Assembly (NCBI GenBank): GCA_039096225.1
Contig: JBBPEB010000020.1
Coordinates: 372,001-436,000, forward strand
Length of the DNA stretch: 64,000 bases
Direction of reading: 5' to 3'
DNA from: Blastocystis sp. Blastoise
Taxonomy: Eukaryota; Protista; Bigyra: Opalinata
How positions within the stretch are numbered: the stretch's first letter is position 1; each line of letters opens with the position of its first letter. A program made the position numbers and the translations under genes. The notes under the pieces were generated by a model. The model was not told the origin of the DNA and did not search any database. It was given only the letters and a program-made list of their open reading frames with translations. Shown here piece by piece: positions 1-55,030 of the stretch.

Positions 1-539
1 AGAAATAAATAGAATAAATAAATTAAATTCATAAAAGTATATATATATTAAAGAAACAACAAGATAGAAAAATAGGAGCTAATTCAATTATAAAAATAAT
101 AATACTAATGAAAACAAAATAAATATGTTATGAGAATGATAAGAATATACTAATAGCATAGAAATAAAATAGATATAGCAAAGAATAAACAAAATGAGAA
201 AATGTAAAATAATTATATACCTTAGATTCATTAGTATTGTTTACCAAGACCTTTAGAGTTGATTTGAAACCATATGAAGCTTGTTCTGAATATCTAAACA
301 ATATGTAACCAATTGATCAACTAATTACTATATAAAACAAAATATTTGAAGAGAGTAAACTATATAATATATAGATTTATGACTAGGAAACATACGTAGA
401 TTCATTTTATATGTCTATAATGACAATATATGAAATAAAACAGTATTTGAGTTTCAAGAAATAATCATTCTGAGGATGGAAACAGGGTTAAAACAGCCTA
501 AATAGCGGAAGCAACCTCTTTGATAAAAACTGTTTTGTG

Positions 540-1392
540 ATTCAGTGAACAAGTTTTAAAAATAATTTCTAGAGATTCAAAGTATGGGATAAAAAGTCTT
601 CTTTGATATGGTCCCTATTCTTAAAGTTTTTCAGAATTACTTCAATCCGTGAAAGTCTTATTCAGCATCAGCTTAAATGAACTGCTGAAAGAAGTATATT
701 TTTTAAATATTATTATATGGATTATTTGTTTATTTAGAAGGTTATTTTATACTTTATAATTATATTATATTTTATATGCATATTATTATAGATTAGGAAT
801 GAAATAAATCCAAATAATAAGCCAATTGGTGATTCATTCTTTCAGGTATATGTTTATTTGAATTAGTATTATATATATAGGTTTGGAAACATGATTTAGA
901 GAGCCTGATGACGTTCGCTATTTAATATTGGAAGAAACTATATTTGTCATAATTTCTTGATTGGCAATTTTGGTTTTAGTGTGATCTGGTAGTATATTGT
1001 TTTATATTTTGTTTCTATATTTAATTATTATATAGTGAAGAATTTGAAAGAAAAAATTAAATGAATTACATTTACTGAGAAGAATGTTACCTAGGTCTTT
1101 TTATTATTTTAATGACTTCTCTCATGATCTTACAAGTATATATTTTTATTATTATCAATATACCTCATATTATTATATAGAAATGGTGAATGATCAGTTG
1201 TTTGAAGTTTTATTATCTTTCAAATTCATAGTATCATTGAATTATTGAAGGTATATATATATATAATAATTATCATATCTTTTATAGGTATAACAGAAAC
1301 AAAACAATGATTATGTCAAGATTATTTTAATATATATTCAGTTAAAAGTATATATATTTATTAGAACTTAAACATCATCATCAATAGTTGAT

Positions 1393-1434
<42 letters not shown>

Positions 1435-3393
1435 TATTTATCATTTTTATTCCTTTTATTCATTATATATATATAATATTATTTATTATATATTATCATA
1501 TATAGACGTATTAATGATCACTTGGATAATCAACTCATTATATACATATAGTATATATATCTACATATATTCTTGTTTATATATGTATATATATATATAT
1601 TTATATTAATAACATATGTATATAGATTACATTATTTATTATAATATTTAAGTATTATCTTATTAGCAATCACACAATGTATATATAAATATATATTCCT
1701 ATTTATTAATTTATATTTTAATAATTTGTCTAGAATATTTTGTATATAATATAATATTATGTTATACATTTTCTTTTTCTTTTTATAATCTATTGTTTTT
1801 TATTCTTAAACTTATATATATATATATAGAATTATTACTGCCATTGAATGGTTTGCTTTCTATAATCGATATTACTACATAATACATATTCTTTTTATGT
1901 AAATATATATGTTATATTACTTTTCTATTATTCTTTATCTCTTATTAGTATTATGTTGTTTATTATCTTTTATTTTATTTTTAAACAATGATTATATATA
2001 TATTATATTTCTATTATTAGCTATATGTCATTTTTTATATAGTGAATAGTTATTGTTATATTCAAGATTATTTTTTAGTATATATATATATTATATTATA
2101 TATTATATTATATATTATATTCCATTTTGAGTTATATACTTCATTCTTCTTTCATTTTTAATCTATAAAGTATGAAGTTTATACAAATAGATACGTTTTA
2201 CTAATTATCATTATTTAGATTATTTATACTTTTTATTTCTTATTCATGTTATTATTATTATTATTATTATTAATATTTATTATATATTCATTCTATATGT
2301 ATAAATATATTTAATAACTATCACATTATATGTGTTTATTTATTTAGTTTTATTTAGTTTTATAAGTTATATATATATACTTAGAGATATATGTATATAA
2401 ATTATTATTATGTATTATTTATTTTTATTATATTATTACCATAATATGTCTATTTGCTTACATATGTATATATAGTTGTTTTATTTCATATTCAAACGTT
2501 GCTTTAGTGAACAAATATATATATTTATATATGATATTATAGAATTATTTTGTATTCATTATATATATATATATTATGCATTAATTTTTACATGTTTGTT
2601 ATACTTAATATATATATATATATGTAATTATTTTATATCTATATATATACATATATATATATAGATATCATTGATATTAATATTCAAAGTATATATATAT
2701 AAACATATATAGACTTATATATAGTATTTTATATGTATTCATATTATAATATATTATGTATAGTTAAATAGTTATATGTAAGTCATCCTTTCATGTTTCT
2801 TATGAATTTATATAAATATAGTTCTTTAATTCTGAATATGTATATATTATTATATATATCATCTTATTCTATATATATTATGTATTTTTTTATTAATATA
2901 AAAGATAATATTTTGTGTATTTAATATTTTATATCAATTATTCTTCTATTTAACTCTTTTATATCATTTATCTTTCTACAACTTTATTATTTATTATCTT
3001 TTTTAAATACCATTTACCATATAGTTTATTATACATACATATAGTAATAGTCATAGCGCTTCTTTATGTATGTTTTATTCAATTATGTTAGTATATGTAT
3101 TGTGGTATATATGTATATTAATTGTCTTTTATTTATATATCGTTTTGTATTTATTTTGAAATAAAGATTATATACATATAGTTATTATGTATATATATAT
3201 ATATATATAACATTATTGATGTGAGCAATTTATTTTTCGTAATATATATTAAGTCTACTTCTCTTATATATAAATATATCTAATAATTTACTATATGTTT
3301 TCCAACTTTATATATATATATATATGTATTTACTATTTTCTATTATTATTATATATATATTGCTAATGAAATTAAGATATTGTCCAGGTAAGA

Positions 3394-3424
<31 letters not shown>

Positions 3425-3836
3425 TTGTTTTTATTCTTATAAGTATTATGTTCTTATATTATATTTAGATATGTTTTTTTCTTTTTGTTTTTTTTTTTTA
3501 ATTATACTGTAAATATAAATACATAACTTTCTACTCTGCTTATTACTTCTTTTATAGTATATATCTATATTTCTTTCTATAAATATGTCATTCATCTATA
3601 TGCTATTATATATATTTTAGAATCCAAGCTCCTAATAGAAACTACTATAATTAATGATGATACAACCTTTTTGGTATATACATATTTATACTATTATTAG
3701 TTTTTTATAACTTATTATGTAATATTTTATTAATATTTTAACCAAATTTATTTATATATTATTATTCATTTTCTTTATTCTCTAACTATTTATAGAACAT
3801 ATCCTTAGCTTGTCTCCTATGTATATATGGCTTTAA

Positions 3837-3867
<31 letters not shown>

Positions 3868-3974
3868 TCTCTTTTTATATCTCTGATACATTATACTTAT
3901 CACATATTAATAGTTATCTTTTATTATAAGGTTTTTATTATATAGATTATTATTAATAGGTATAATGGAGTATT

Positions 3975-4000
<26 letters not shown>
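540..4000 (+). pseudogene. Heavily decayed multi-exon host gene fragment(s), product unrecognisable
   Basis: Exon-like blocks bounded by gtatat...atag introns (e.g. IRNEINPNNKPIGDSFFQ, VWKHDLESLMTFAI*YWKKLYLS*) with many in-frame TAA/TAG/TGA; becomes almost pure A/T after ~1400. Confidence 0.5.
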
Positions 4001-4006
<6 letters not shown>

Positions 4007-4081
4007 TATAATTATATAATTATATTTTGGGTTTTTGTCTGTTAAACATATATACATGGTTATATTCAAATAATTAATATT

Positions 4082-4149
4082 CCTTAGACTGAATATGGTT
4101 AGTAGCAATCATTAATAGATTGTTATCAGGTTCAATTCCTGATCTAGGG
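4082..4149 (+). ncRNA. tRNA-like cloverleaf, copy 1 (non-canonical)
   Basis: CCTTAGA/TCTAGGG 7-bp stem; CTGA-ATATGG-TTAG; TAGCAATC-ATTAATA-GATTGTTA; TCAGG-TTCAATT-CCTGA (B-box); T5 run ~14 nt downstream. Confidence 0.7.
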
Positions 4150-5670
4150 TCATATATTATACTTTTTATAAAAAAATTTAAATATTTTTCTCTATAGATA
4201 TTCTCATTCATTAGAACCAGTATGAAAGGGTATATTGAGTTTCATGTAATTAAATAAACTCTATACATTGCTAGTCGCTTTTCTATAATGTTTTTAGTTT
4301 ACTATATTCAACACACAACACATTCACAATTGCATTCACTTAGAATACCATATTCATTATTTTGATTTGCTATATATCCTATTGATCAATTCTACACACA
4401 AATAAAAAATAAATATTCATCAATAACATCTTGAAGTCTATAAACACGCAATGCATTATTAGTTTATACTCTTAAAAAGCATTTTAACTGTTTATATTAA
4501 CATGATTGACACTAAAAGTCATTTGTAACATTTATAAACCACTCTTGAGACTTTTAAAGAACCTTGACAAATCTACATTACCTAGAAAACTATTATAATT
4601 AACTTTAGTTTATATAGGTCATAATTAAATTTAAATTATTAACAGAATGTCAGAATAAATGCATTCTAACTCAACATATCACGGAGAAAAATTAATTCTG
4701 TTTGTAACTTCTCTAAAATTGAATTAATTAGTGAAATACGTATTCAAACTAATGTTGAATTTAAATTCAAACACACACAAACTCACCTTTTCTGACAGTT
4801 CTACACATTTAGGCAATCTAGTGACTATCACATAATCGACTAATTTTTGTTGTCTTCATCAAGTCTAACTATTTCCTCATGGCCGTAACCATTAATTTTA
4901 TTTTATTCAACACTCTATAAATAATTAATCAATTAACTAATTTTATTTACATAATTACATACTCCAACAACAACAACAAGACATCAGGAGTAATAATAAC
5001 GGTTTAAAGTATTTAAATTAAATAATAAATAATAAAAAGTAGAAATATTAAGATTTCAATAAAATTTAATAAGTTAATTTATAGTGAAGTTTCAATAATC
5101 ATATATAAAATATGATTTATTTCGTTTTTGTATGTTTTAAGTATATATTTATCTATATATAGGCCCTAGGAGTATAGTAGAGTACCTTCCAGTCTCCATT
5201 GGCAGATTGATCTGTTGTGCTATGTTCTCTTTCTCTATGGTGAGCTTGTCTGAGTGGTGTAAAGTGGTTGAGCTAGATGATCTGCTATTGTATTGTGGTT
5301 TAAATTGGATGATGTGACGTCACCATACAAAACTATTTCTTTAGGCTTTCTCACTGAGTAGCAATTGGTCGGTTATATTAACTGAGCGTGGCTTGATACT
5401 TTCAAAAAAAAAACTACTTAATTGGATAAACAGATTGGTCTTAAATTGCAGAGAAGCATGGATCTCTTCACTTAATCACTACCTATAACACTCAAATGCT
5501 TATAATTAGAGTTAGTTGGTATTAGTCATATTCAGATTCTAGATGTATATATTTTCTGCATTTATTTTCTTTATAATTATAATTATAATATTATATAGAT
5601 ATTTATATAGGTTATTATATAGTTATTAAGCCTAGTTCTTGTTCTTCTTGTCACTAACTTCTTGTTTTTT

Positions 5671-5707
<37 letters not shown>

Positions 5708-5832
5708 GACTTTTTTTATTTTGCTTATATATTATTATTTTCTTTATTATTAAGAATAAATTTTGTTCATATTTATTATTAGTTTTATTCAATATATTTA
5801 TTGACTTTGTTCTATTCTTCTCTTTTTTTATT

Positions 5833-5870
<38 letters not shown>

Positions 5871-5899
5871 CAAAACTTTTATATATTTGTTTTTCTTCA

Positions 5900-8100
5900 T
5901 TCTTATTTTCTCCTCTTGTCCTCTATTGGCCTTGTTCTCCTCTTCTCTCTTCCATTCATCTACTCTCTAGTTTCTACTCATTTTATATTCTTATACTCTT
6001 ATGTTATATAGAACAGTTATTGTTTTTCTTAATATTACTTTATAGTATGTTTTATTTCATGTTCTTCTATTCTATATTCTAGTTTTTCCTTCACTTTCTT
6101 CTTTCCTCCATTAATTATTACTGGTTCTTCTTCTCCTATCATTACCTACTCTCTTCATTTCCTTCTCTTTATCATGATCTTCTTCTTTTTCATTTCCTTC
6201 AACTCTTCCTTTTCCTATTCTTCTTCTCCATTTCCTTCTATATTATTACTTCTTTTTCTCCTCTTCTTCCAATTATACTTTCTTTATTTCTTATTCATTT
6301 TAATTATTCATCTACACATTGTTTCTATTTTCCTTCTTCTTCTATATATCCTTATTTTTTGTCTCCTTGTTCATTCCTTTCTCGTTCTTTTTCATCTATT
6401 TATCCTTCTTCTATTTATTTTAATTCTGAATCACCTTCTCTCTATCTCTTTCTGTTTCTTCTTCTTCTATTTAATCTTATTTTTCTTCTTCTCGTCTTCT
6501 TCTCTTTCTATACATTCTTCTCTGTATATATTTTTTTCTCTCTATCTCCTTCATCTGTATTTTCTCTTCTATTTATCCTTATTCTTATTCTACATTTTCT
6601 CCATATCATTCTCCTCCTATATCTTATGTATCTCCTTTATCTCTTTATTCTTCATCTATATCTTCTATTTATCATTCTTCTTCTATATATTCTTATTCAC
6701 TTTTTTTCTTCTATATATTCATATTCTCTTTATTCTTCTTTATCCTCGTCTATATTTCTTTCTTCAATATTATCGGCATCTTCTTCTTCTTCTATATCTT
6801 GTATATCTTCTATTTATCATTATTTTCCAACATATTCTTCTGTGGTACTTCTTCTTTTTTTGTATTTTTCCTTCTTTTTTTATATCTTCATTAATCTTTC
6901 TTCTTCGTCTTTATATTATTATTCTCCTTATTCTTCTTTATTTTCTTCTTCTTCTTCTACTTGTTTTTGTTATTCTTTATTCTTCTCTTTCTTCTTCTTC
7001 TTCTTCGATATATTCTTCTTTTCTTTCTTTTACTTATTCTCCTTTTCAGTTGTCTTCTCTTCATATATCCTTCTTCTTCTCTGTCTCTTTCTCTCTCTAT
7101 CTCATTCTACTTCTTTTTTCTATTCATCTTTCTTCTCCTCCTTTTCTTCATTTCATCCTTCTCCTTCTCCTTCTTCTATTCATCTTTCTCCTCCTTCTTC
7201 TTCTCCTCCTTCTTCTTCTATTTATCTTTCTTCTTCTTTAATTTATCTTTCTTCTTCTTCTAATTATCTTTCTTCTTCTTCTATTCATCTTTCTTCTTCT
7301 ATTCATCTTTCTCTCCTTATTCTATTAATCTTTCTTCTTCTTCTTCTTCTTCTTATCCTCCTTCTATTCATTTCTTCCTTCTCCTCCTCCTCCTCCTTCT
7401 TCTTCTTCTTCTATTTATCCTTCATCTCCTTCTTTCGCTTCTCTATCTCCTTCTTCTTCTTCTTCTTCTTATTCTACATATCATTTTTCCACTTTTTCTA
7501 TATCTTTCGCTTCTTCACTTTCTATATCTTCTGTATATCATTCCTCTCCTTCTTCTTCAACATCTTCTTTTTATATCTTATAATTCTTTCCTCTTTATAT
7601 TATTCTCATTTCATTCCATTTCATCTATTTTTCTATATCTCATTATTTTCAATATTTATTATACAGAATATCATTTATATTTAATGTTTTTCACTTTCAT
7701 TATCTTTTCCATATACATTATAGTCTTATTTGCTTTTCCTACATCTTCACTTGTTCTTCTTATGTGTATTCTCCTCATATTTTTATTTCTTTTCTAATAG
7801 ATTTTCCTTTATAGTTCTTCTAACTCTTCTCTACATTCTTTCTTCTTTATCTCTTATACTTGACTTTCTAGTCTCCATCTTTCTTTTTTTTTATCTTCTT
7901 ATCTTATTATCTATATGTACTTCCTCTTCCTCTAATTCTTCTTTATACATATAAATTCTTTTCGCTCTTTATCCTTCTAATCAATTCCTTCTTCTTCTCA
8001 TTTAATTAATATTTTTCTTCTTCTTTATTTATTTTCCCTTATTCTCCTTATTCTTGTCTTCAATTTTTTTCTATATTCAATTCTTATTTTTCATTATCTT
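5900..8100 (-). pseudogene. Decayed Glu/Lys/Arg-rich coiled-coil protein coding fragment
   Basis: Minus strand reads EEER*IEEER*LEEEER*IKEEER*IEEE around 7200-7310; stops fall where CGA/CAA are expected. The plus-strand F/S/L ORFs are its antisense. Confidence 0.65.
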
Positions 8101-8261
8101 TTATATCTATATATATATATATATATATACATACTTCTCTTCACATTTTAATTATTTCTATCTGTTATACTTATTAATATAATATTTTTTTTTATTAATA
8201 AAAAGATTTTCCCATTTTTATTTCTTATTTATATTTCTTATTTCATTAATTTATATACTAC

Positions 8262-8328
<67 letters not shown>

Positions 8329-8383
8329 TATATATATATTGGATATTATGTATTTTAATATTATTATCATTATTATTATTACT

Positions 8384-8449
8384 CTTATGCTCTATAAGGT
8401 GAGAGGCTATCATAATTAGATAGCAATCAGGTTCAACTCCTGACATAAG
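8384..8449 (+). ncRNA. tRNA-like cloverleaf, copy 2
   Basis: CTTATG/CATAAG; CTCT-ATAAGGTG-AGAG; GCTATC-ATAATTA-GATAGC; TCAGG-TTCAACT-CCTGA. Confidence 0.7.
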
Positions 8450-9676
8450 TCATTCCTTATATATATATATATATATATATTGATATTTTATTTAATAAAC
8501 ATTTTAATTATATGTTCTTTTTACACTTATGAATGCATTTATTAAATTATTTATAGCTCTTCATCCTTCAAAACTTCATAGTTTCTGAAATGAGTTGTAA
8601 TCTGCTTTATTCTCAACAGTGTATCTTATTCAAAATATGTTAGAATTGAGTTAAATGCAGTTTTAAAACTTAGATTCATTTTTTATTTTCAAAATATACT
8701 CAAATACAGAGTCTATTTAGCAATCATTAATACTTTAACAACTGTAGTTTATTATTTTAAACTGAATTCTGGTCAGTATGCTCAACATAAGCAACCAAAC
8801 ACAACACATACACATTCATGATTTTTAAACAACATTTTCCATTTCGACATTTACTTGATCCATTATAAAACTATCTGTCCTTTTGATATAGTATCGAGAA
8901 ACTAATATCATATACCAAACAAAACTTGTTAACTTGAATCTCGTCATCTATTAAATACTTTTCTTAATCAATTCACAGTTCATACTCTTAAAACAGTTAT
9001 TTGAGATTAATATTTATATGTTTGTCTTTAAACAATGTAACTATGACATTGTAATAGTATATATGAAAATATAAAGAATCAACAAATCTGTTAATTATCA
9101 AAAAATAAGTTCTATTTTCTAAAAACATCTTTATAATATTTATAAACTCATATACTATAAATACATAGATCTTATATAAAGTATTCATTGAGTAAATTAA
9201 TTTGTCAGTAAATTAAAAGTATGTTATATAACGTAATTCTATGTTATCTTTTTAATAAAGTTTATTTCATAGCTGTTTATGGCTTATTTGTCTATCAAAC
9301 TTATTTTTTAAAACAATTACAGACAATTATGTTATGATCCTTGTCTATATTGTTATTCTATTGAACTAATAGTATAAATACAAGTTATATAACAAAATAA
9401 ATGTATATATTGATTAAAATAAGGAATGAATATAAATAAATAAAAATAGATAAAATTGCCAAAAAGCAAATTCTTAGAATTATATAGTACAATAAACGAA
9501 CTTCTAATAGAAACTTAAAAATCGATTGATTGGATCAAATAGTCAAATCATAACGTCATAATATGAATTATTCTTTTAATTTTTTATTAATTTAAATTCT
9601 ATAAATACATCTAATAAACACGGTTATTATATAAATTAATACGATTGGACAATGAAATCAAAATGTTAACAGATAC

Positions 9677-9751
9677 TTTTGGGTATTTCTACCAAATCAT
9701 ACAAAAAATTGGGTATGTATACAAATCAATAGGGAAATCTGGGTATTTCTA
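9677..9751. mobile_element. Possible Mutator-like terminal repeat abutting a (TTA)n tract
   Basis: Minus strand starts GGAAAAATGTTAGAAATACCC with three ATACCCA sub-repeats, resembling MULE TIRs; no partner TIR found in the window. Confidence 0.3.
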
Positions 9752-10496
<745 letters not shown>

Positions 10497-11165
10497 TCAG
10501 GATCAAATCTAATGTTTTTCATTCATATGATAAAGCTGTCATAATAGCCGACTCAGCTTTTGGAAATGCACATACTATTTCTCAAATGAAGATTAATAAA
10601 ATAAACTTCGTATTTGCTCTTCCTTCTCATGCGTTCTCAATACATCAGAAAGTTTTACAGTTTAATCTACCTTGTAATTCAAATAGAATACTCATGAATC
10701 AAAATAGTAAAGATATTATTAGTTGTGAATCATTCATTAATGTAGAAAAAGGGGTTGTAGCAAACAAATGTGTATATTCAAATTTCTTCAAGCTCGGTTC
10801 GTGTGGTGTAAAGTGTCCAAAAGATATTATTGGTATGTATAAATTAGCAGATATAATATATATTTTCTTATTATTATAGAACAATATTCACCTATAATGC
10901 CAAATTATACCTATGATGAGCTTAAACCATTAAAGGTTGACGACTTGAAAGATATTTGCAGAACAAATGGACTATCTCGTATATATATATATATATATAT
11001 ATATAAACTTTCGTCGTAATTATTTCATTTATTAATATCTATATCAACATATTATAAAGAATTTGATATAATTATATATAAATGTTTCTATTGTATGTTC
11101 TTATTATATGTCATTTTTTATTTAAAATGTTATTTTTTTAAAATTATTATAGTTATTATTATTTA

Positions 11166-11194
11166 CTAGCGGGTGGCATCGGCTTCGCCGATGC
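11166..11194 (-). terminator. Helitron 3' hairpin + CTAG
   Basis: 8-bp GC-rich stem with GAA loop, 6 nt upstream of CTAG, followed by T. Confidence 0.92.
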
Positions 11195-11445
11195 TATGTA
11201 TCTATTAAGTCTATTTCAGTAAATTATTTCTTGTTCTTTGTTATTTATTTATTTATTTTTGATAATGATAAAGAATTATAAACTAAACAATATAAATTTT
11301 AAGAATTAATTATTAACAAATAAAAATAAACAAATATACAATTTAAAATTGAAAATTAACAAAAAGTATTCATAAACAATAAGAAAAATAAGAAAAATTA
11401 GAAAATCGAAAAAAACATATAACAAAATACAACAACAAAAATAAA

Positions 11446-14400
11446 TTATAATACTCCATTAAATACACAATTTTTAGTATACCATTCATTACTATTTCTG
11501 ATTAATTGACCTTGATTAATATTATCATTCTTTATAAACATTTTTATACCATGAAAAGAACGTACTCTACTTAAAGCAACATATAATTGACCATGACTAA
11601 ATACAGGTCTTTCTAAATAAATACCTACATTTTGAAATGTTTGACCTTGTGATTTATTAATAGTCATAGCAAAAGCTAATCTGACAGGAAATTGTTTTCT
11701 ACTTAACTTACATGGTAAATCACTATCGTCTACTATAAATTTAATTCTTGGAATCAATACTATATCTTGTCCTTCTAACATATTATCAGTTCTTACTAAT
11801 AATTGACTTCTTATTACATTTGGTTTTGTATCTAATACTACTAATCTCGTTCCATTACATAATCCTCTCTTTATATCTAGATTTCTTAATAACATAATAA
11901 CTGAACCTCTTTTCAATTCTAAATCATGAGGTGGACATCCTTGAGGAATTAAACTATTTAAATATTCTGTACTATAAGCATCTCTTTCATCTATATCTTC
12001 TACTTCTTCTGCTAATTCATCATGACTATAATAATGATGAGAACTTGATCTTATCATATTTTGAATTCTTTCATTAATTAAAAATGCTTGTTCATTTGTT
12101 GCACATAATATACAATTTGAAGCTAATTTCTGTCTATATATATCTGTATTTGAATCATTAATAAATTCATGAAATATCTCTTCACCTATATTCTCATCAC
12201 AAATACATTCTCTTGGAATATGTACTTTATCTTTTGATAATAATCTTAATTCATTATTACATCTATCACCATTTCCTATCTTCAATAAGAATTCTTTAAA
12301 TTCTATTTCATTTGCATTTGCTCTCATATTTTCTGTTAATTGAAATTGATTAAATTCATTCCAAATATCTAAATATTTAATACATAAAGGAACTATATCA
12401 GCTTCTTTTCCATGAGCTACTACTGGTAAACATTGTCTAAAATCTCCACCTAATACTATTGTTTTACCTGCAAATGGAATATCTATCTCATCATTATATA
12501 AGAATCTTAATAATCGATCAACTACTTTTAAAGCATATTTAGAAGCCATAGGAGCTTCATCCCATATTATTATTTTACATTTCTTAATTTGTTCTGCTCT
12601 TGGAGATCCTCTTGAAATAGAAGAAGAAGAAGATTCATTTAATTCAAAAGGTAATCCAAATTGTGAATGAGATGTTTTTCCTCCACATAATAAAGTAGCT
12701 GCAATACCTGTCCATGCAACTGCTATCACATCATCTATATTATTTCTTATTGATTTAATTATTGTATTATAAAGAAATGTTTTTCCAGTTCCTCCTGGTC
12801 CATCTATAAAAAACATATTATTTCTATGAGGTTCATTATTATTCACTGATTCCATTATTGATTCATATACTCTTCTTTGTCCTTCATTCAATAAACTTAT
12901 ATTTCTTTCTGCTATTCTATGATCTTCTTCAAAATTAATTCCTTCAGATTCATAATCTATCATATTAGTATTATTATCAAATTGTGGTAAATTAGTACTT
13001 TGATATCCTCCATTATGTTTATTTGTATCTATAACACTTCTTATATGATTTAATGCTCTAGGTATACAATATTCTTCTATTATTCTATTCACTTCATTAT
13101 CTTCTGAATCTAATACATATATATCTTGTCTATCTATACTTATATATTCATTTATATATTGATGAAAGAAATCATCTATCATATCATTCCTATAAGTATT
13201 CCAAATAGATAATGGATCAGTAATAGGATAATAAGAACAAAGTAAACCAAATAATTGTCTTAATTGCCAAGGAGTAGCATCTATTACTTCATTTGCAAGA
13301 ATATCATAATATTCTGTATCATCTACTAATAATCCTCTTGCTATACAGGATTCTCTATATGTATTATATATTTGACCTTCATAACATTTTAAATCATCAA
13401 AACTTAATGGACGACTCACATGTAATAAAAGAACTCTTAAACAAAATAAATTATCATTTGTAGGATCTATATAAGGAAGTCTTCCTATTACTTTATTATT
13501 TCTTCTTCTATGATTCCATTTCTTTAATTTTGAATCATATGTATAATATTTAGGAAATTCTATATAAGTTAAAATAGAGGGTTCATCCATTGTTCCTCTT
13601 GATTCTTCATTTATATATAAATCATTCATTTTAAAATATGCTGTTAACATTGTATCTTGATTCATTATTCTATCTAAAGCTCTTTCTTCATCTCCTTCCA
13701 CATAATATATAGTTCTATCATTCTCATCATGAATATCTAAAGTAATTACACTCACATTACAATATTTTATTGGAAATCCATATATTCTCCACATAGCTTC
13801 AGGAGCTGATAAATATCTTCCTTTTAAATAAGATTTCATTTCATTTGGTATTTCTATTTCATTTCTATTTGAATTATTTGGATTATTATTATTAGCATTA
13901 TTATTACTATTATCTTCTCTTTCTATTTCTGCATTAATAGAATCATGTCCTTTAAAAGCATATTTAAATATATATTTAGGACTTCTTACTGAAGAACATA
14001 CTTCTACATTAATATGACAACCTATTCTTAATGATAAATATGGATTATATGGAACTACCCATCTATTATCTAAAGTATTATTTACATTTGATTGCCTACC
14101 TATTACATATACTCTACCATTATCTCTTCTTCTATAATTTGGATATCCATCTTCATTTATTGTAGTTTCATTTCTATAATCTTTTGGAAATTTCTTTGAA
14201 CAATATTGTTGACCATTTATTTCTTTCATACATTGAGATGTTCTTGTATGAGGACCATGCATATTCATTGAAGTAATAATTTCATATAATCTTGGATTCT
14301 TTATAGGATCAGGAATTTCTGCACATATATAGGAATCTATATCTTCAGGAGTTCTTAATTTATATTCATTCTCTAAAGTAATTAAAATATGTGCATGAGG

Positions 14401-17400
14401 CATTCCTCTCTTCTGATATTCTATAGAATAACATATACATTTTACTTCTCCAAATACTTTAAAATTTGTTATCAAATGAGTTAAGATTTTCAATTTTATA
14501 TAAAATACTCTATCTACTATATCAGGTCTCATCCAAGGTTGTTGACCTTCTTCTAATGATTCTAAGATTTCTGGCCAATTTGGATTGCAAGTCATGGTTA
14601 TAAATAAATCTGGTTTACCATAAGCTCTTACAATAGCCATTGTTTCTAAATAGGAATTCTTCATATATCGAGGACCACCTACAAAACTTGATGGAATAAT
14701 AACTGCTTTTCCCATTCTACTTCTTATATATTCATCACTAAATCCATTTCGTATCATCTCATTCACTGTATCTCGAAATACAGAATATTTCTCAGATCTT
14801 AATTTTGTTTGATTATTTGCTATAAATAATAATCTTGAATATTCTATTTTTGTAGCTGCATCAACCATAAATTGTAATAATAATTTTTCAAATAATAGTA
14901 AATAATTCTTATGATTAGGATGCCTTGTATATAATAAATAAGAATAAAATTCTCTTAATGAAATAGTAGGTATAGTATAAAATTCATTTCCTAAAATATC
15001 TAATGGAAATCCTCTTTCTGATCTATTTCTAAAAATTGGAATAATTCTCATCGATTTTGAATCATCTCCATTACTATCATTATTCTCTGTATGATTACTA
15101 TTTATTCTATAATTATTTCTATTATTTAATTCATTTTCTACTTCTTCTATTATTTCATTCTCATTATTATTATTATTATTATTAGTTGTTGTTCTTGTAG
15201 AAATATTTCTATTATTATTATTATTATTTTGACGATTTAAATGTAATTCAGAATTACGTATAATATTAGAAGTAGATTCTAAACTCCATAATGGTAATCC
15301 ATAAGGAAACATTAATGGATATATTAATGGATCACAAAATGGATTATTATAACTAAGATTTGTTATTTGTTGTTCTGATATATTTTCATTATTATTTTCA
15401 TTTTCATTATTATTTTCATTATTATTTTCATTTCTTCTTCTTCTTCTTGGATAACATGAAAGATTAATATTTGGTAAACCTTCATCATTTTGTTTTGGTA
15501 TAATCATAGCTATTTCATTTGTTGTAGTAGGAGCATTAAATCTTCTTCTATCATCATAATTACTTATTTTAAATTGTAATTTTAAATTTACTTGTGAATA
15601 AGTAGTATTATTTATTCTTCTTGATTCTGTTACTTGTTCATGTAATGTTTTAAAAGATTCATATATTTTATTATTATTTCTTATCATAGAATCAATACTT
15701 AATAATAAATCAGAAGATAATTCTGAAAACATACTATTTCCATTTCGAATATGAAGAGCTTCTTCTTCATCATAAATATATATTTGATTAAAAGAAGGAG
15801 GAGAATTATCAGAAGGATATAAATCACTCATAGAATGATATACATTACCATGAACTCTATAAAAATATGGTCCTGGACCATTCATTCTTGTTACTACATT
15901 AGAACATGACATAGAAGCAAAAGCAAAAGCATTATTATATCTTCTTATCTCATTTCTAAATAATTTATTATTTGGTGTTTGACTCTTTAATTGATTTAAT
16001 AATTCATTTGGAAGATTTATAGGTGATTCTACTTTCACTTTCCCATTATTACAACACATTGTATAATTTGAATTTCTTGTAATGATATAATCATGATCTC
16101 CTTCATAAAAATAAAATGAATTTCGTGCTCTAGAAGACTCTGTATTATACTGTAAGTGTGAAACATATTTATTAAAATTATAGTTTGCTCTTTCTGCTTC
16201 AAAATGAATAGCTTCACAATGAATACAAACATGATTCATTTTACCTATATTATAATATTCATATTTATTATTTCTATGAATATCTCTTTCATTTTCTTCT
16301 ATTATTTGTTCTCCATTTCCTATACATAAATAATAATAGTTTTATTATCATAAAGAAAGAATTATAATGATGATATAACATTAAGCATACTTAATTTAAT
16401 ACATGCTTCACAATTTTCAAATCTTATAACAATTGGAATATTGTTATTATTTTCTTCATTATTATTTTCATTTTGATTATCTATATCTATATCGTTATTA
16501 TTTGTAGTATTTATTGGTTCTATTTGCAAAATAGGATTATTAGTAGTATTAGAAGGAATAATAGGTGTGAAATCACTATCTGCACTTGAATCATTATCTG
16601 AAGTAGAAGAATCAAAATTAATTCTTCTTCTATGATTATTTATATTTGTTGATAATAGATTATTATTATTAGGATTTTGAATAGGAGATATTTGATAATA
16701 ATTTAATATATCTAATATAGATGATCTTGGTAGAGGAGGAATAATAGAATGATTATTATTATTATGAGAAGAAGAAGAAGAATTAATAATTCTTGAATCA
16801 AGAGGAGATAATCTAGGAGGAGTTATAATGAGTGAAGTAGAAGGGGATACTATTTGATTATTTGTATTAGAATTTGGTGTATTATGTATACATGGAGTAT
16901 GATTATTATTGATCCTATTATTATTTGAATGTATATCATTATTGTGTTGATTATATAAAGGAGTTACAGGATTATTTAATATTATAGGTTGTGTATTATC
17001 ATTTGTTTCATTATTTTCAAAAATAAAAGTAGAATTAAAACTATCATCAATTATTGATTGAGATATACTTTCATTATTATTATTTATTTCAGATTCTATA
17101 AAATTTGTTTCATTAATTAAAGTTTCAGATATATTTTCGTTATTTAAACTTGTATTATTATTAGAATCTGGCTCTATTAAATTGATTTCATTAATTAATG
17201 TTTCGATTGTGTTATTATTATATGAATTTGTATTATTACTTTGAGTTGAAGTATTATCTGAAATAGGAGAAGAAGAAGATATAGTTGCTATATTGTTTAG
17301 TTGTATTGGGTGTTGTTCAGTTACTATTTCTTCATTATTTAAAGAATTATTTGTATTGAATAATGAATTGTCTTGATTAAAAGCATTTTGATTTTCATTT

Positions 17401-17497
17401 AATATTTGGTCATTAATCCTTTTAGATTTGTGGGTATTCAAAAAATTCCCAAATATATCTCTTCTCTTAAGAGAATTAAATCGCTTTCTTTTGTTTC
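11446..17497 (-). CDS. Helitron Rep/PIF1-type helicase (RepHel); exons 17497-16391 and 16319-11446, start exon upstream not resolved
   Basis: HUH Rep motifs GKPDLFITMTCNP, EYQKRGMPHAH, KYIFKYAFKG; SF1 helicase motifs GPGGTGKT, WDEAPM, GDFRQCLPV, NGTR, AMTINKSQGQT, HGQLYVALSRV; N-terminal CxxC. The Asn-rich ORF 16362-17441 splices in frame (phase 1). Confidence 0.97.
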
Positions 17498-17726
17498 CTA
17501 TAGTATTATATATTATTAGTATTATATATAAGATTTTATTAATTAAATAATATTAATATTTGTAAACATATATATATAAAATATTTTATTTTTTTAATAA
17601 TTTAAAAATAAAATATTTAACTAAACAAAATATAATATAAAAGAATAAATAATTAAAAAAGAAATAAAATAATACAAAACAACAAAATATTTATAAGCAA
17701 AAACAAAAAAAAATTTAAAAAACTCC

Positions 17727-18227
17727 TTAATAATATTCAGGAGAAGAAACAGGATAAACAGGAGAAGTAGGAGGTGAAACCCTTTCATCATAATAAGGAG
17801 GACTTGAGAGATCCTCGTCACTTTCATTCTCCTGATTATTATTTAAAGTAACTATCAAGTCATAATAGAATTTAAATAATAAAAATATTTACCTTGATTT
17901 GTTGGATTTGTTGAATATCTGTTTTTATTTGCAAAAAGAGTTGTGTTGTCTTTAAATATAAACTTATTTGTTATTTCTGAGTCTGTAGTACCTATATATA
18001 TTTTAGGTTGTTTTCATTATTAAAACATACCGTCACAATTAATAGTAAACAGATTACTATTAAAAAATATTTTTTCAAGGGTGTTTTTGTAGTTATTATT
18101 ATCTAAAGAAAAAACAATAAAAATATTTTTATTATTTTATTAGAAAATAATATACCTTTGTCTCCCTTGTTGTTAAGACAAAAGCAAGATGTATGAAATT
18201 CAAAAGTATTTTCAACTCTCTTACAAT
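17727..18227 (-). CDS. Helitron accessory exons (72, 72, 99 nt, plus terminal exon ending SPPTSPVYPVSSPEYY*)
   Basis: Phase-1 GT-AG bounded exons 18227-18156, 18102-18031, 17991-17893 and ~17851-17727, all open in one frame. Confidence 0.55.
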
Positions 18228-18707
18228 CTAAATATATATGATAATATATTTTTGTAAGTAAGTGAAAATATTTTAAAGATCAAACATATACAAAAACAAA
18301 AGTGTGTAACATTGATTTGCCATAACAAATAAGTTACAACACAGAACCAAAACAAACACATCAAAAAATATAAAACAACAATATTATATTTGATATCTTC
18401 TATCAAATTAATTAATATTAAATACTATTTAAGTTTATAAACTTTATACTATATAAAGAGACATCATGAACTTTAACAAAGCAGAGTCGGACATTTTATA
18501 TAGGTTAAACTAAAATAATAAATAATATAAATTCATTCAAATAGAAGAATAACAAAAACAATAAAAGCTGTTAAATATTTAATGATATAAGAAATAAAAA
18601 TAGAAAAAGAAGAAAAATTAAAAAATTACAAAAAAATATAAACTAATATAAAAAAGAATAAACAACAAAGCAAACAACAAAAACAAAAATACTTTTTAAA
18701 TTTATAC

Positions 18708-21700
18708 TAAATAGTGCAGAAACACTATTATTCTTATTTCTTTTGGATTTAGTTCCTTTATCATTTAAATCTAAAATAAATTAATAAATATTTATAATTT
18801 AACATACCTTTTAGTTTACTTTCATTATCATGTCTTTTAGACCTCTTTGAGAGAGTGCGGCGGTTTTCTATGTATATATATAAAAGTTATATAAAGTATA
18901 TAATTTATATATATAAAAGTGATATAAAGTGTATAATTACTTTTCATAACGGAATGTTTTGATCGCTTATAACTATCTATAAATATATAAAATTATTGAT
19001 AGATATATATAGATATATACCTAATAATGAAGAATTATTTAAGGAGGAATCTATAGAGAAGCATTCTATATATTTTATACCCAATATATAAAATTATATA
19101 ATATATATATACTTTTTGATAAAGAATAATTCAGCGATGAATCTATAGACATATAATTCATTATATAATATATAATATATATAATATATATATATATATA
19201 TATAAGTATACTAATAGAAGGAATAGGATTGTTAGAGGAATCTATATAAGACATAATATATTATATAATATATAATATATATATAAATGTATACAATTAG
19301 AAGGAATAGGATTGTTAGAGGAATCTATATAATATATAATATAATAAATAATTTAATATATATATATAAATGTATACTAATAGAAGGAATAGGATTGGTA
19401 GAGGAATCTATATAAGACATAATATATTATATAATATATAATATATATATAAATGTATACTAATAGAAGGAATAGGATTGGTAGAGGAATCTATATAAGA
19501 CATAATATATTATATAATATATAATATATATATAAATGTATACAATTAGAAGGAATAGGATTGTTAGAGGAATCTATATAAGACATAATATATTATATAA
19601 TATATAATATATATATAAATGTATACTAATAGAAGGAATAGGATTGGTAGAGGAATCTATATAAGACATAATATATTATATAATATATAATATATATATA
19701 AATGTATACTAATAGAAGGAATAGGATTGGTAGAGGAATCTATATAAGACATAATATATTATATAATATATAATATATATATAAATGTATACTAATAGAA
19801 GGAATAGGATTGTTAGAGGAATCTATATAATATATAATATAATAAATAATTTAATATATATATATAAATGTATACTAATAGAAGGAATAGGATTGGTAGA
19901 GGAATCTATATAAGACATAATATATTATATAATATATAATATATATATAAATGTATACAATTAGAAGGAATAGGATTGTTAGAGGAATCTGTATAATATA
20001 TAATATATTATATAATATATAATATATATATAAATGTATACTAATAGAAGGAATAGGATTGTTAGAGGAATCTATATAAGACATAATATATTATATAATA
20101 TATAATATATATATAAATGTATACAATTAGAAGGAATAGGATTGGTAGAGGAATCTATATAAGACATAATATATTATATAATAAATAATTTAATATATAT
20201 ATAAATGTATACTAATAGAAGGAATAGGATTGGTAGAGGAATCTATATAAGACATAATATATTATATAATATATAATATATATATAAATGTATACTAATA
20301 GAAGGAATAGGATTGGTAGAGGAATCTATATAAGACATAATATATTATATAATATATAATATATATATAAATGTATACAATTAGAAGGAATAGGATTGTT
20401 AGAGGAATCTATATAATATATAATATAATAAATAATTTAATATATATATATAAATGTATACAATTAGAAGGAATAGGATTGGTAGAGGAATCTATATAAG
20501 ACATAATATATTATATAATATATAATATATATATAAATGTATACAATTAGAAGGAATAGGATTGTTAGAGGAATCTATATAAGACATAATATATTATATA
20601 ATATATAATATATATATAAATGTATACTAATAGAAGGAATAGGATTGGTAGAGGAATCTATATAAGACATAATATATTATATAATATATAATATATATAT
20701 AAATGTATACTAATAGAAGGAATAGGATTGGTAGAGGAATCTATATAATATATAATATATTATATAATATATAATATATATATAAATGTATACTAATAGA
20801 AGGAATAGGATTGGTAGAGGAATCTATATAATATATAATATATTATATAATATATAATATATATATAAATGTATACTAATAGAAGGAATAGGATTGTTAG
20901 AGGAATCTATATAAGACATAATATATTATATAATATATAATATATATATAAATGTATACTAATAGAAGGAATAGGATTGTTAGAGGAATCTATATAAGAC
21001 ATAATATATTATATAATATATAATATATATATAAATGTATACAATTAGAAGGAATAGGATTGTTAGAGGAATCTGTATAATATATAATATATTATATAAT
21101 ATATAATATATATATAAATGTATACTAATAGAAGGAATAGGATTGTTAGAGGAATCTATATAAGACATAATATAATAAATAATATAATATATATATATAA
21201 ATGTATACAGCTTAGAGAAGCTGGCTTTAATGAAGAATCTATATAAGACATAATATATTATATAATATATAATATATGTATAAGTATACTAATAGAAGGA
21301 ATAGGATTGTTAGAGGAATCTATATAGATATAATTCATTATAAAGTGAATATATATATATATATACGGCTTAGAGAAGCTGGTTTTAATGAATAGTCTAT
21401 AGATATATGTATCATTATATACTATATTGTATATATATAAATATACTGCTTAAGGAAGCTGGTTTCAATGAGGAGTCTATAGAGAAATTCATTACTATTA
21501 AATATAAAAGATTATATGTATATACTATTTAAAGAAACTCGTTTCAATGAGGAAGCTACGGAAAATAGGTAATTATTATATATATATATACGTATACTGT
21601 TTAAGGAACCAGAAGCTATAAATATTATGATATAACTAATAATTAATAATGTAAAAATAAAAATAGGGTAATTCTGTAAAAGCATTATAAAATGCTATAA

Positions 21701-22234
21701 AAGAGTTGATAATAAATGAAAAAAAAGTATATACCTAGCTTATGTTTCAAAGAAGAATCAGAATTTGAAGAACAAACTATGTATATATAGAATTAAATTT
21801 GTATAAATATAAAAATAATACTATAATAAAAATATATAATAGATATACCTAGTCTTTTTTTTGAAGAAACAGAAGAAACGGAAAGAACGGAAGAAGGAAC
21901 TATACATAAATGATTAATTATGTAAGAATAGTCTATATAATTATAAAATAACATAATAATTATACTATTTATTTTATGCAAATAAATGAATAAATAATAT
22001 ATACCTATCTTATTTTTTGAAGAATCAGAAGATATGTTTCCAGGAACTATATATAAATAGTTAATAATAATGATATAATAATGATAAAATATATACCTTC
22101 ATCATCATACTGAGAAAGCAACGACAGCGACGGACATTCCATTTCATAATTTGAACCTAAATAAAAAGAATTAATAAAAATGTAATAAATAGCATGCCTT
22201 CTTTAGTAATAAGAGAACCTTTTGACTTGATCAT
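18708..22234 (-). CDS. Helitron-borne Ser/Asn/Pro-rich micro-exon gene (~40 exons, mostly 30 nt)
   Basis: ATG at 22234, then internal exons of 60, 42, 51, 42, 18, 30 (x~31), 36 and 60 nt. Each is a multiple of 3, phase 1 and stop-free, with GT (one GC) donors and AG acceptors. Confidence 0.75.
19210..21325. repeat. 83-bp minisatellite, 25 copies of the core (30-nt exon + 53-nt intron)
   Basis: agaaggaatagg recurs at 19216, 19299, 19382 ... 21130 and 21294. Confidence 0.97.
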
Positions 22235-25200
22235 GATATTTTTAGAAGAGTTACTATAGAATTGAAAATAAAATAAAAATGAAACCATTCCGGTTCTTAT
22301 ATTTGTTTTAAGAATCTTCAAAATTCTAAATCTTTGAGATTTTTGAGATTTTTTGAGATTTTATGGGACACAAAAAATGAACAACCAATTATTATTCTTT
22401 TCATATTTTGACTTTTTTATTTGTGTTTCTAAAGAAATAAAATTTATAAAAATTATAAATAATTCTATTGGTTGATAAAATAAGCCAATTGTTTTATTTC
22501 TTTGTATTTTCTATTATTAAAAAAATAATTAAAAACAGAAGTTTGTGTTTTGTTTATACTTTATATATTACCTTTCTATTTTTTATATAAACACAACAGT
22601 TTTTTTAATAAATATATAAATAAAATAAATATTCTTTTCTGACTATTAAATTTTTATTTAAAAGGATTCTGACAACAAATTGACAAAAATATTTTTAATA
22701 GACTTTTAATAATAGCTTAAAAACATATCAGTGGCCATTTCACTCAAGAAAACAGCAACTGTTTGAAAGATTGAACACAACAATGTAATTCACTCATTTT
22801 TTGATACTATTAATTTTTACTGTTTTAATAACTAATGCCTCTAAAAGACTTACCATTATTAGAAAAACACTTTAGTAACATGTTTGTAAAACATATTACA
22901 AAGAATGGGTCAGAATGTCAAACTATTTTTATTTTTTAATTGATTTGAATAGATATATTTAATATATATGTTGTTTTAAAAACATTTAGTAAAAAAAATT
23001 TATAACTATTACTTTACAATTCAACATTTAAAAAAAAAACATTTCAAGTTGACTCTTGAAAATAATTTTTAAAACTAACTATCAACAGTTTAACAAATTA
23101 TTTTGGTTTTGATTAGAATCGTTTAGTTAAGAAAGACTTTTGAGAGACTTTACCATTTTGAAATGTTTTGCATCAGAATGAAATCGTCTTCAATTTTGTC
23201 ATTCAGTAACTTGTGTCATACAGAGTTACAAATAACAAAAATTGACTTGAATCTCTACTATATAAAAATTAATTGTAAATGAATTCACTCTTTAAAACAA
23301 AATATTGAAAAATAGGTTTAATTTCTTTATTTGTATTTCCTTTGAAAACTATATTTTATCATTTTCAATGAATTTAAAAAACATAGAGTCAGAATGGAGA
23401 CATATCTTCAAAATACAAAACTATTTTAAAACTATTTTTTACTCATAAACATCTATATAACAGTATCCAACTCATTTTTACGCTTTACGTTTAAAATTAA
23501 TAGTGATAAGTCACAATTATACTGTTTTCAACTTTTCAATATAAATATAGCAAACATTTGTTTAAAGTCTTATATTATATATGTATCTAGTAATTGAATG
23601 TTAACCTGTAAAATAACTCATCAAAGTATGTTTACATCAGCCAATCTGTTTGTTAACTGTCTTTTAAAAAGCCAATATTTATATATTATATGTCCAAAGT
23701 CTTAATGTATTTGTAAATAGTACTTATATATTTTAAAATATTCTCATTCAACTCAAAATTAAATAAAAAAACAAAAAACAAAAACAAAAAACTCTAAAAA
23801 AGACATAATATTTATTCATTTAATAACTCTATCAATTTTTAATTAATTAAATTTTTTTTCATATACATTTAATAAGAATAGCATAACATATATAAATTCT
23901 ATTATATTTTAACTATATATTATAAATTGATGACCGAAATCGGCCTGAGTTAAAACAATAAAAACACAATTTTTGAAAAATTATGAAATTTGTTTCTCAT
24001 TTTTGACCCCGAGATTCAACGATATTTTATATTTTGATTTGATATATGTATACAATGATATATTATCTATTTATATAAGTTTAAAAAAGTGTGTTAGGAG
24101 GACTTTTTTTGGTGCAAAGCCGCAATTAACTTTTTTTGACCTTTTTTAAAAAGTCTTTAAAGACAAAAAAAATCATAGTGTAACATATATCGCATCCTTA
24201 CACCAAATATGAAGTCAAGAGTCGAAATTAAAGTGGTCGAAATCTGCCGATACACCAACTTTGTTGTTAAAAATATACGATAATGGCATATTTGTGTATA
24301 GTCCAGGTTACTATATTATATAATAAAGTCAGAATTTAATTTAGAAAAACTTGTCTGGATATATATCCAGTCATCTTTGCTTTAAAGTTATAAAAGTGTG
24401 TTGTATGAGTGGCGATTTTTGTCTAAACATAAAATATAAAGTCAGATAGTCTTTAGAAAGAGTTGAATGATTTCGATATGTTTTTGACCTCAATTATTTT
24501 GTAATCTGTTCATATATTTCAAGAGGTGTCATGTAGTCATACAAATAAATGAAGTCTAGAATTGAAATAAAAGAAAATTATTGGCAGAACACACAATTGA
24601 AGTTTTTTGTTACTTTTTCAACATGCTAAAAACTGGTTTTAATCACTTTTAGGATGTTTTCATGACTAATAATGATGACTGGAGTTGTTTCTATAAAATT
24701 TGAAAGGGGTCAAAAGAGAATGTGCTCGATATCTCAAAACTTTGTGGATGAAATTTTTTAAACTCTTTATACTTATTGGTTATACGACTCATTCTATGTA
24801 TATAGGTTGATTATACGTTGTTAAAGTCACTTTTAAAAATGATTATTTGTTTAATTGTCTTTTCAAAATCTAAAAGTAGTTTATTTGTTTAACCTGATAT
24901 TTAAAATATATAAAAATTATTTTATTAAAAATATATATGTTCTTATGTAAACAAACAAATAAAATAAAATAAATAAAAAAAATTAATAAAATTCATTAAA
25001 TGAAAAAATTTCTTTTGTAAAATTATTATAAAAAAAGAAATTTTCTATAGAATAAAATTTATAAGAAAAAGTAAATTTTTAGAAACAACTGATAATTCTA
25101 TAAAGAATGAAAGAATTCTATAAAGTGTACGACAGTTTTTATTGGATAAAAACTCAAATTTTGAATTTTATTGCATTTTAGTGGCCAAGTCGGTTAAGTC

Positions 25201-26606
25201 ACTTCTTTGTGAGACCGTTTTAGGCCCTTAGACGTGGAATTTCTGAAAATTTTAAAAGCGCGTCATAATACGTTTTTGATATAGATTCTGAATCTTTTGT
25301 AAGTGTAACACAGATGTGTAACACAAAAAAGTAATCGGTCCATTTATATCAGTACAATTTCGTGCTTACTTATCCCTTTTATATATAAGATATGTTTCTA
25401 TTATTTGTTCTTATTATATCTCATTTTTTATTTAAAATGTTAGTTTTTTTAAAATTATTATGGTTATTATTATTTATATTATAGAGTACGGGAAAAAGGA
25501 AGAATTGATTAAATCCATTCTCGATTATACAGAATTTGTTAAATCAGAAGCCAGAAATGTTCCATTGATGAATATTCTCAAAGGATTTGCAAATTATAAC
25601 ATAAATAACATAAATGATGTATATCGAAAGAATTTCAACTTAGTTGATTTGATGAATCGATACTATTTTCAGGTAAAACGACCGTTGTCTTCAAAAAATG
25701 TTTCAACTGCAATGGTAATTGCAATTTTAAATTTTGCTATATTGAATTCGTTTTCACTATATTCTGTCAACCATTCAGAATCTTTATGCTATTTTAAGCT
25801 TCAATTAGCAAAAGAGTTGATACGCGAGCTAAATTAAAATATATATTTTGAAAATAAGTTTCAAACATTATTATTTTTTATATCTCTATGTATTATATTG
25901 TATTCATAACCTTAATGATTAAAAATCAAATTGTTTCTCAGGTGATTATCACTTAATCAGTTAATCATGTTAATTGTTTTGTTTTGTTTCTATTTTGATT
26001 GATTAATACTATTATAAGATATGCTTTTGCTGTCATAATAAAATAGAGAAAACCTGTATTTAGTTAAAAATTTATAAAAATAAAAAACCTTAAAATAACC
26101 AAAAACGAGTCATAATTTTGAAAAAAACGAGTTAATTGTAGAGTTTCTTGATTAGTGTGTTACTATAAACACTATTAATTAACTGAAAAAAAATTATTCT
26201 ATAATTATAAGAATTATATATATTTATTTATAATAGTGAAAATTAATATTAGTCAAACTACTATTTATTTTTAGTATATATTATATATAAGTATGACATA
26301 TATTTTCTTTTTTTAAAATTTATTTAAAAAAAAACGATAATATTTTTTATATATTTTTTTTGTTCTTTTCAAAAGTAGTTTTAAATATATATAAACATAG
26401 AAAAATTTAATGACTTAATTTATAAATTTTTAAAATGTAAAAAAAAATAATTTTATTTCCATTACTTTTAGACATCTTTATTATGAAATGGATTCTTTAT
26501 GAATATTAAAAATGAATTTATCTATTATTAAAAAAGAAAATATGAATACAAATTTTTATTCATAAACTATAATGTATTTTTATTATATATAGATAAGTAG
26601 ATATTA

Positions 26607-26760
26607 GTGATATGAAATAGTAGTAGTTAAACTTTTGAATTTTTAAAATTTTAATTCTTTTTTTTTTCCTATAAAAACCAACGCGTTGTTTTTTATAGGA
26701 AAAAAAAAAGAATTAAAATTTTAAAAATTCAAAAGTTTAACTACTACTATTTCATATCAC
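26607..26760. repeat. 154-bp spacerless palindrome
   Basis: 77-bp arms centred on ACG|CGT (26683/26684), one mismatch. Confidence 0.97.
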
Positions 26761-27205
26761 GAAACAGATATTTATATTAAAAAACAAAATAGAATAAATG
26801 AGATCTATTTAGATAGAATATATGCAGGATACAATAAAATCATATATGATAAATCAAATAAAAATTATATATAAGCATTATGATTTAGTCACTAATACAT
26901 AAAATTATAAAATTATTTCTTTTATATAAAACTAATAAAAAAATATATATTAATAAATAAACATTCCAGAAAGAATAATTTAAGCAAAATAACTTGAAAT
27001 AATAAATAAAATTATTGTTTATTTTCGTATCATAATATCTTTCTTAGATGAATGTAATTTATATTAGAGAAACTATTATGAGATGTTTCATTAATGAAAC
27101 TATTATAAACTATAAACTACTTCAAAAAGCATTTTTATGTATCTATATGATACAATATATTTAAAAATATTTTTGTATAAATTATAAAACTCTAAAGGAT
27201 ACGAA

Positions 27206-27233
27206 GCATCGGCGAAGCCGATGCCACCCGCTA

Positions 27234-27234
<1 letters not shown>
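27206..27234 (+). mobile_element. 3' end of a non-autonomous Helitron of the same family as 11166 (candidate 5' TC at 25883)
   Basis: GCATCGGCGAAGCCGATGCCACCCGCTAG^T is identical to the 11166 terminus; no RepHel ORF upstream. Confidence 0.85.
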
Positions 27235-27316
<82 letters not shown>

Positions 27317-27319
27317 TTG

Positions 27320-27370
<51 letters not shown>
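27235..27370. repeat. (TAA)n microsatellite
   Basis: Trinucleotide array between the Helitron CTAG and the truncated hAT end. Confidence 0.95.
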
Positions 27371-27371
<1 letters not shown>

Positions 27372-54985: not shown

Positions 54986-55030
54986 TTCAAGCGTAGGCTG
55001 GCGTAGCCAGTCGTGAAACGCTTGAACTAA
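54986..55030 (+). mobile_element. Helitron-type 3' hairpin + CTAA
   Basis: TTCAAGCGT-A-GGCTGGC-GTA-GCCAGTC-GTGAA-ACGCTTGAA then CTAA^T (CTRR); same GGC-GNA-GCC apex as the 11166 terminus. Confidence 0.6.

Follow-up and report, generated by a model that had tools for sequence, protein, structure and literature searches.

The locus considered here raises the question of what an 83-bp minisatellite is doing inside a Helitron transposon of the tortoise-gut Blastocystis sp. Blastoise and, if the repeat is coding as an earlier note had proposed, to which gene it belongs. The element that carries it (HLE1) occupies 11166..25390 of the window, by which we mean the whole stretch of 64,000 nucleotides analysed; it lies on the minus strand, as do all parts of the gene given below, and measures 14,225 bp. 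It is a canonical Helitron by every test applied, sharing with the elements described in PMC11417382 a 5′ TC start (25390), a 3′ hairpin followed by CTRR (CTAG, at 11166), insertion between A and T, a Rep domain of the HUH type with two Tyr, and a PIF1 helicase. The insertion point is given by an empty site on contig C1, whose flanks match those of the element at 100% on the left and 99% on the right and which reveals no target duplication, and the matching of many copies begins at 25390-25393. The RepHel exon (11446..16319) opens with a Cys/His finger-like region followed by the HUH motif, the two-Tyr motif and the PIF1 helicase, the open reading frame at 16239-11446 containing both Helitron_like_N and PIF1, and its closest relatives are proteins from Blastocystis sp. 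Blastoise itself. The Helitron carrying the array is young: in the 33.3 Mb (34 contigs) of the genome that were searched, RepHel identity among sixteen copies is 97-100%, and thirteen more copies form a second family at about 49%. For the tortoise Blastocystis isolate Rus-B, a genome of 33.3 Mb with 23% GC, longer introns and normal stop codons has been described (PMC10690189).

Several features surround the element. An imperfect direct repeat of ~90 bp stands on either side of it (25391-25482 and 11067-11165); this was rejected as a target duplication, as the empty site on C1 already has two tandem copies, between which the element sits. The same ~90-bp sequence adjoins one end of several other copies (C10, C7, C4 and C34), which hints at a preferred target or at carry-over of the 3′ flank. 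A second Helitron 3′ end with the same hairpin and CTAG, followed by a (TAA)n tract, is found at 27198-27371 on the plus strand, and a 154-bp spacerless palindrome lies at about 26607-26760. At 52750-53140 there are four tandem units of ~103 bp with AG/GT-like borders and bodies of 51-60 nt, with no open frame on the plus strand. At the start of contig C8, a 5′-truncated Helitron copy adjoins a short telomere-like repeat.

The minisatellite itself was delimited by TRF at 19178-21365, with a period of 83, 26.3 copies and 92% matches. The proposal that each repeat is an amplified exon plus intron is borne out by this and by the sequence of the 26 units, each of which has a 30-nt segment between YAG and GTATAC, 25 of the type SSxNPIPS and one, interspersed among them, of the type SSLKPASLS. 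The units correspond to predicted exons 10-35 (19212..21319), each a 30-nt exon with an intron of 51-58 nt, and would encode 259 aa with 31% Ser, 24% Asn and 20% Pro. The introns measure 53 nt save for one of 51 nt (21289-21239) and one of 58 nt (20212-20155), the latter accounting for the entire extra length of the single 88-bp unit, as had been claimed. Likewise, the TAG-to-CAG variant, which precedes 21072 and 19988, keeps the acceptor, and no variant hits the AG. The variable columns of the 83-nt unit are 10, 28 and 30 in the exon and 51-81 in the intron, and GT and AG are never touched. All three exon variants within the array change amino acids, and the variants inside arrays generally are mostly amino-acid changing, although they are too few, and not independent of one another, for an estimate of dN/dS. 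On balance, the minisatellite is probably the product of tandem amplification of one exon-intron unit within the 5′ coding arm of the Helitron.

The array is embedded in a curated chain of 44 predicted exons that runs from an ATG at 22234 to a stop at 17727 and is open for 573 aa. Symmetric phase-1 micro-exons, postulated earlier for the repeat and its surroundings, extend along the entire chain: all 43 introns are in phase 1, as are both RepHel acceptors, and the diverged flanking exons, of 18-99 nt, are without exception multiples of three and free of stops in phase 1. Exon 1 (22198..22234; 37 nt) contains the ATG and has a GC donor both here and in the C10 copy, with C-type copies having GT at that position. 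It is followed by exon 2 (22097..22156; 60 nt), which has a second in-frame Met near 22142 and a conserved short motif, CPxLSLLSQY, whose differences between subfamilies are mostly synonymous. Exons 3-9 (21367..22046) are diverged Ser-rich micro-exons of 42, 51, 42, 18, 30, 30 and 30 nt, and on the other side of the array exons 36-37 (19021..19142) are diverged 30-nt paralogues. Exons 38-40 (18693..18976; 36, 60 and 78 nt) confirm the previously predicted basic block, with 19 Lys/Arg in 62 aa, which is common to all subfamilies seen. A long intron or gap of 465 nt (18228..18692) contains a 68% T tract that may be an alternative 3′ end, and beyond it lie exons 41-43 (17893..18227; 72, 72 and 99 nt), which form a small module that lacks a start codon of its own and matches nothing in Pfam. 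Exon 44 (17727..17851), the terminal exon of the 573-aa form, is acidic and Ser/Pro-rich and ends in YY-stop in all subfamilies. Downstream, a symmetric phase-1 exon of 1,107 nt (16391..17497), rich in Asn and Ser, has no upstream start exon; its acceptor at 17497 is conserved in all copies.

Within the long gap, a 65-nt block (18450-18510) is about 92% conserved between A- and B-type copies, above its flanks; in it a TATA-like run precedes an ATG that lacks a conserved frame, and the block may be a regulatory element. A hydrophobic candidate exon at 18399-18292 is likely due to chance, its donor being lost and its frame shifted in B-type copies and no match existing in C-type copies. The C10 copy has an insertion of ~3 kb in this gap, at window position 18417, the end sequence of which recurs at about 54985-55025 of the window.

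Several kinds of sequence comparison lend good support to a protein-coding arm in which both the reading frame and the splice sites are under selection. A phase-free gene finder placed 42 of 42 arm exons in phase 1 and in multiples of three, against 4, 3 and 3 introns in phases 0, 1 and 2 for the host-type genes at 37.5-43.3 kb, a small control with the same splice signals. A frame-blind caller applied to 13 loci returned 222 of 228 exons with lengths divisible by three, compared to 9 of 33 on the opposite strand (lengths modulo 3 of 9/14/10). The 30 non-redundant exons all have lengths divisible by three, and none contains a stop in phase 1, whereas 22 and 17 of them do when read in the two alternative frames; in base shuffles, the chance of all 30 being stop-free in one frame was about 1e-12. 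Indels between copies preserve the frame in 11 of 11 exonic cases versus 2 of 22 outside exons (Fisher p 4e-7), and pN/pS in orthologous flanking exons is 0.33-0.39. These comparisons show selection also on short motifs at the two ends of the predicted arm, namely exon 2 on the one side and the basic exons 38-40 and exons 41-44 on the other, and free replacement of the spacer sequence between them.

The product of the arm would thus consist, in order, of a short conserved motif, about 280 aa of uncharged Ser/Asn/Pro spacer, the basic block, the small module, and either the acidic tail or RepHel. Its Ser/Asn/Pro-rich composition agrees with the Ser-rich protein that had been anticipated, and it has no hydrophobic segments, the maximal 15-residue hydropathy of the model being 0.93 overall and 0.03 in the first 40 aa, with neither a signal peptide nor a membrane segment. 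The basic block resembles a nuclear signal, and we infer that the 573-aa form, which has no catalytic domain, is probably nuclear and a candidate helper or repressor. A word search, a full HMMER search and an Atlas look-up of exons 38-44 revealed no relatives outside these Helitrons; Pfam gave no match for the arm, and AlphaFold modeling of the exon 38-44 module yielded a pLDDT of 42 and no usable fold. In public models, the second Helitron family has a Ser/Asn/Lys-rich leader of 600-900 aa with a short conserved core, and the similarity of this leader to exons 41-43 is suggestive by eye and not significant.

Where the gene ends is the point at which the earlier note has to be revised, since it had described a separate accessory gene with a basic C-terminus ending at 18708. 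Other copies lack the donor at 18707, which was rejected as the main one on account of this missing conservation, whereas the donor at 18692 is conserved. Four further phase-1 exons follow (18227-17727), and the chain, still in frame, most likely leads on into RepHel. The RepHel-side exons at 17497 and 16319 are both open in phase 1, the predicted splice of exon 43 to 17497 gives 2,525 aa with no stop, and both this route and that to exon 44 are predicted to be open in frame. The 230 nt preceding 17497 contain no stop-free ATG exon, the only start-exon candidates in the 465 nt that precede exon 41 have atypical or non-conserved donors, and before neither exon 41 nor the RepHel acceptor is there a stop-free ATG exon with a conserved GTA donor. 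As exons 41-44 and RepHel have no start of their own, the array more likely than not forms the 5′ arm of a single unit that would give rise to both the 573-aa protein and the 2,525-aa RepHel, a reading to which we assign a probability of roughly 0.6. The public models of sister copies (WA158_000549, WA158_008457, WA158_001879 and WA158_006929) have the same micro-exon boundaries, with a 27-nt unit amplified and the micro-exons joined to RepHel or to exon 44, so that the architecture is already present there, under the name of hypothetical protein; the models disagree at several junctions, look ab initio and are therefore not independent proof. The GC donor of the first intron and the cost to a transposase of having 45 introns spliced correctly would both count against a single unit.

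It is also possible, if not the probable case, that exons 1-40 constitute a separate accessory gene that ends in the T-rich tract at about 18690-18520 and encodes a Ser-rich basic protein of ~467 aa, with exons 41-44 and RepHel being expressed from other starts. The T content after exon 40 (68%) resembles that after two definite stops (63-65%) and is unlike that of ordinary introns (48-54%); the joins between exons 40 and 41 (465 nt) and between exon 43 and RepHel (395 nt) are long, the other introns measuring 37-119 nt; C-type copies also have a long gap after exon 40; and the break between diverged and near-identical sequence falls at this gap. However, the read-through tails that this would produce vary in length and sequence between subfamilies, the phase-1 donor at 18692 is conserved, exon 41 and RepHel have no conserved start, and a motif resembling S-x-L-F-x-I-N is common to exons 40-42 across the gap. 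The single unit and the product of exons 1-40 may both occur, as isoforms.

The sister copies show how such an arm changes. Only the C10 copy shares the 30-nt unit described above (A-type), likewise in 25 units; its array is flanked by sequence 99.8-100% identical to that around the present array, yet the two arrays agree in their variants at just 10 of 25 positions. This difference in variant order may reflect rapid gene conversion inside the array, or else an error introduced by polishing with short reads. B-type copies have instead amplified a 27-nt exon to between 17 and about 25 units, with introns of 36 to >130 nt and arrays that include higher-order blocks, and all 94 pattern matches to the 27-nt unit lie in or near Helitron copies. 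Nested insertions occur in B-type arms, one being a palindromic element of ~800 bp and others measuring 3 to >20 kb, and where seen they sit in TA-rich introns. C-type copies have about eleven diverged 27-30-nt exons that are paralogous to A-type exons (up to 23 of 30 positions identical, against a shuffle 99th percentile of 15), with the first unit present as four repeats in one copy versus one in the others; exons 39-44 of this type, like the second family, are known from coordinates or public proteins. Unit number thus differs between copies, in keeping with the length-tunable protein proposed earlier, and the presence of different units in three subfamilies implies that amplification took place at least three times, each time of a different unit. 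Free accumulation of frameshifts and splice-site losses in other copies, named earlier as an outcome that would speak against a gene, is seen only to a small degree: the frame is kept, and of the 105 B-type units 6 either lack one of their splice sites or contain a stop. This is a mild warning: single units are dispensable, in a symmetric design that tolerates their loss. Silent divergence (pS) climbs from about 0.03 in RepHel through 0.05-0.16 in the long Asn-rich exon to 0.5-0.75 in the arm exons, and the non-coding leader is 92-100% identical to that of a C-type copy; such divergent arms between near-identical flanks point to recombination between copies.

In the mechanism that we propose for the single unit, one pre-mRNA would be spliced either to exon 44, giving the 573-aa protein, or past it to RepHel, giving a 2,525-aa protein with a mostly disordered leader of ~900 aa. 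With all introns in phase 1, the 6-kb RepHel open reading frame stays in register whether a unit is gained by duplication, lost or skipped. Uniform phase would be expected where weakly defined tiny exons stand above a long essential frame, as the transposase would not survive the skipping or duplication of an asymmetric one. Different units would run away in each lineage through slippage or unequal exchange in the AT-rich introns, and recombination between copies would place arm haplotypes of old origin on RepHel cores that are almost the same. In the most economical view, selection would act on the frame, the splice sites and the motifs at the ends, leaving the spacer to drift in both sequence and length, and the array is more plausibly a tolerated, disordered spacer of variable length than a device that generates variants. 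A stronger version, in which the all-phase-1 cassette is an exchangeable, length-tunable transposase leader whose haplotypes are swapped and selected, for silencing escape or the tuning of a regulator, with skipping adding length variants, is rather unlikely in our estimate.

Other accounts of the arm fare less well. Retention for the sake of splicing and not of the peptide, whereby some 40 quickly spliced introns would mimic host mRNA and avert silencing or decay, would fit with splice sites and intron density being conserved between subfamilies and the array peptide not, but unit number varies twofold, units decay, and the same data are accounted for by plain drift with selection on the frame, which makes this quite improbable. 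More doubtful still is a device akin to the schistosome micro-exon genes (MEGs), with regulated exon skipping and diversifying selection from the host or from genome defence. The architecture to which the earlier note drew attention stands, most of the coding length of the arm lying, as in MEGs (PMC4350168), in very small symmetric exons (73% for exons 1-40, counting those of ≤36 nt; 57% for the 573-aa form; 13% for the RepHel form), and strongly differing arm haplotypes of old origin have persisted on a common RepHel core. MEG products, however, all have a signal peptide, are secreted or anchored, and combine high dN/dS with demonstrated skipping (PMC4350168), whereas the gene here lies inside a transposon, its modeled product has neither signal peptide nor membrane anchor, so that it is not a MEG, orthologous flanking exons have a pN/pS below 1, and, as the array units are nearly identical, skipping would alter length only and not sequence. 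Helitrons often carry repeats and captured fragments, and some B- and C-type units are dead, which would be consistent with a non-coding minisatellite or a captured and decaying host gene. This explanation is nonetheless extremely unlikely and already largely refuted, opposed as it is by the frame, stop, indel and pN/pS tests and by the failure to find a host source in the genome and protein collections, in which the arm matches only Helitron copies.

The single transcription unit with a micro-exon arm can also be compared to other known systems. Transposase genes are usually compact, and the predicted arm is an unusual gene layout. Other Helitrons may carry a recognisable extra domain such as RPA, OTU or EN (PMC11417382), in place of which a 44-exon, all-phase-1 micro-exon arm is predicted here, and no transposon gene of such layout was found in the literature searched, within the limits of that library. 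The aphid bicycle genes (bioRxiv 10.1101/2021.09.24.461719) similarly have many small internal exons of one phase and keep their structure as their sequence diverges, but they encode secreted host effectors and have no sequence relation to the Helitron arm. The pairing of a short non-catalytic protein with a full transposase from one transcript, as would be the case here, recalls the 66- and 87-kDa proteins of the P element, which differs in working by retention of one intron and in that its short form, which has a DNA-binding domain, is proven to be a repressor (PMC7776569), whereas the Helitron arm appears to use an alternative last exon and offers a candidate short regulator.

What the locus adds to the public models is a third, independently amplified unit and a measured divergence valley over the arm. 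It indicates that coding sequence can take the form of a minisatellite and be masked as low-complexity DNA, and that an active transposon keeps some 45 predicted introns of one phase and has amplified different exon-intron units by lineage. This provides a natural example, recent and replicated, in which tandem duplication has added introns and exons and in which exon symmetry is under selection ahead of a long, essential open reading frame. If the short and the long product both prove true, they would suggest how a Helitron regulates its own transposase.
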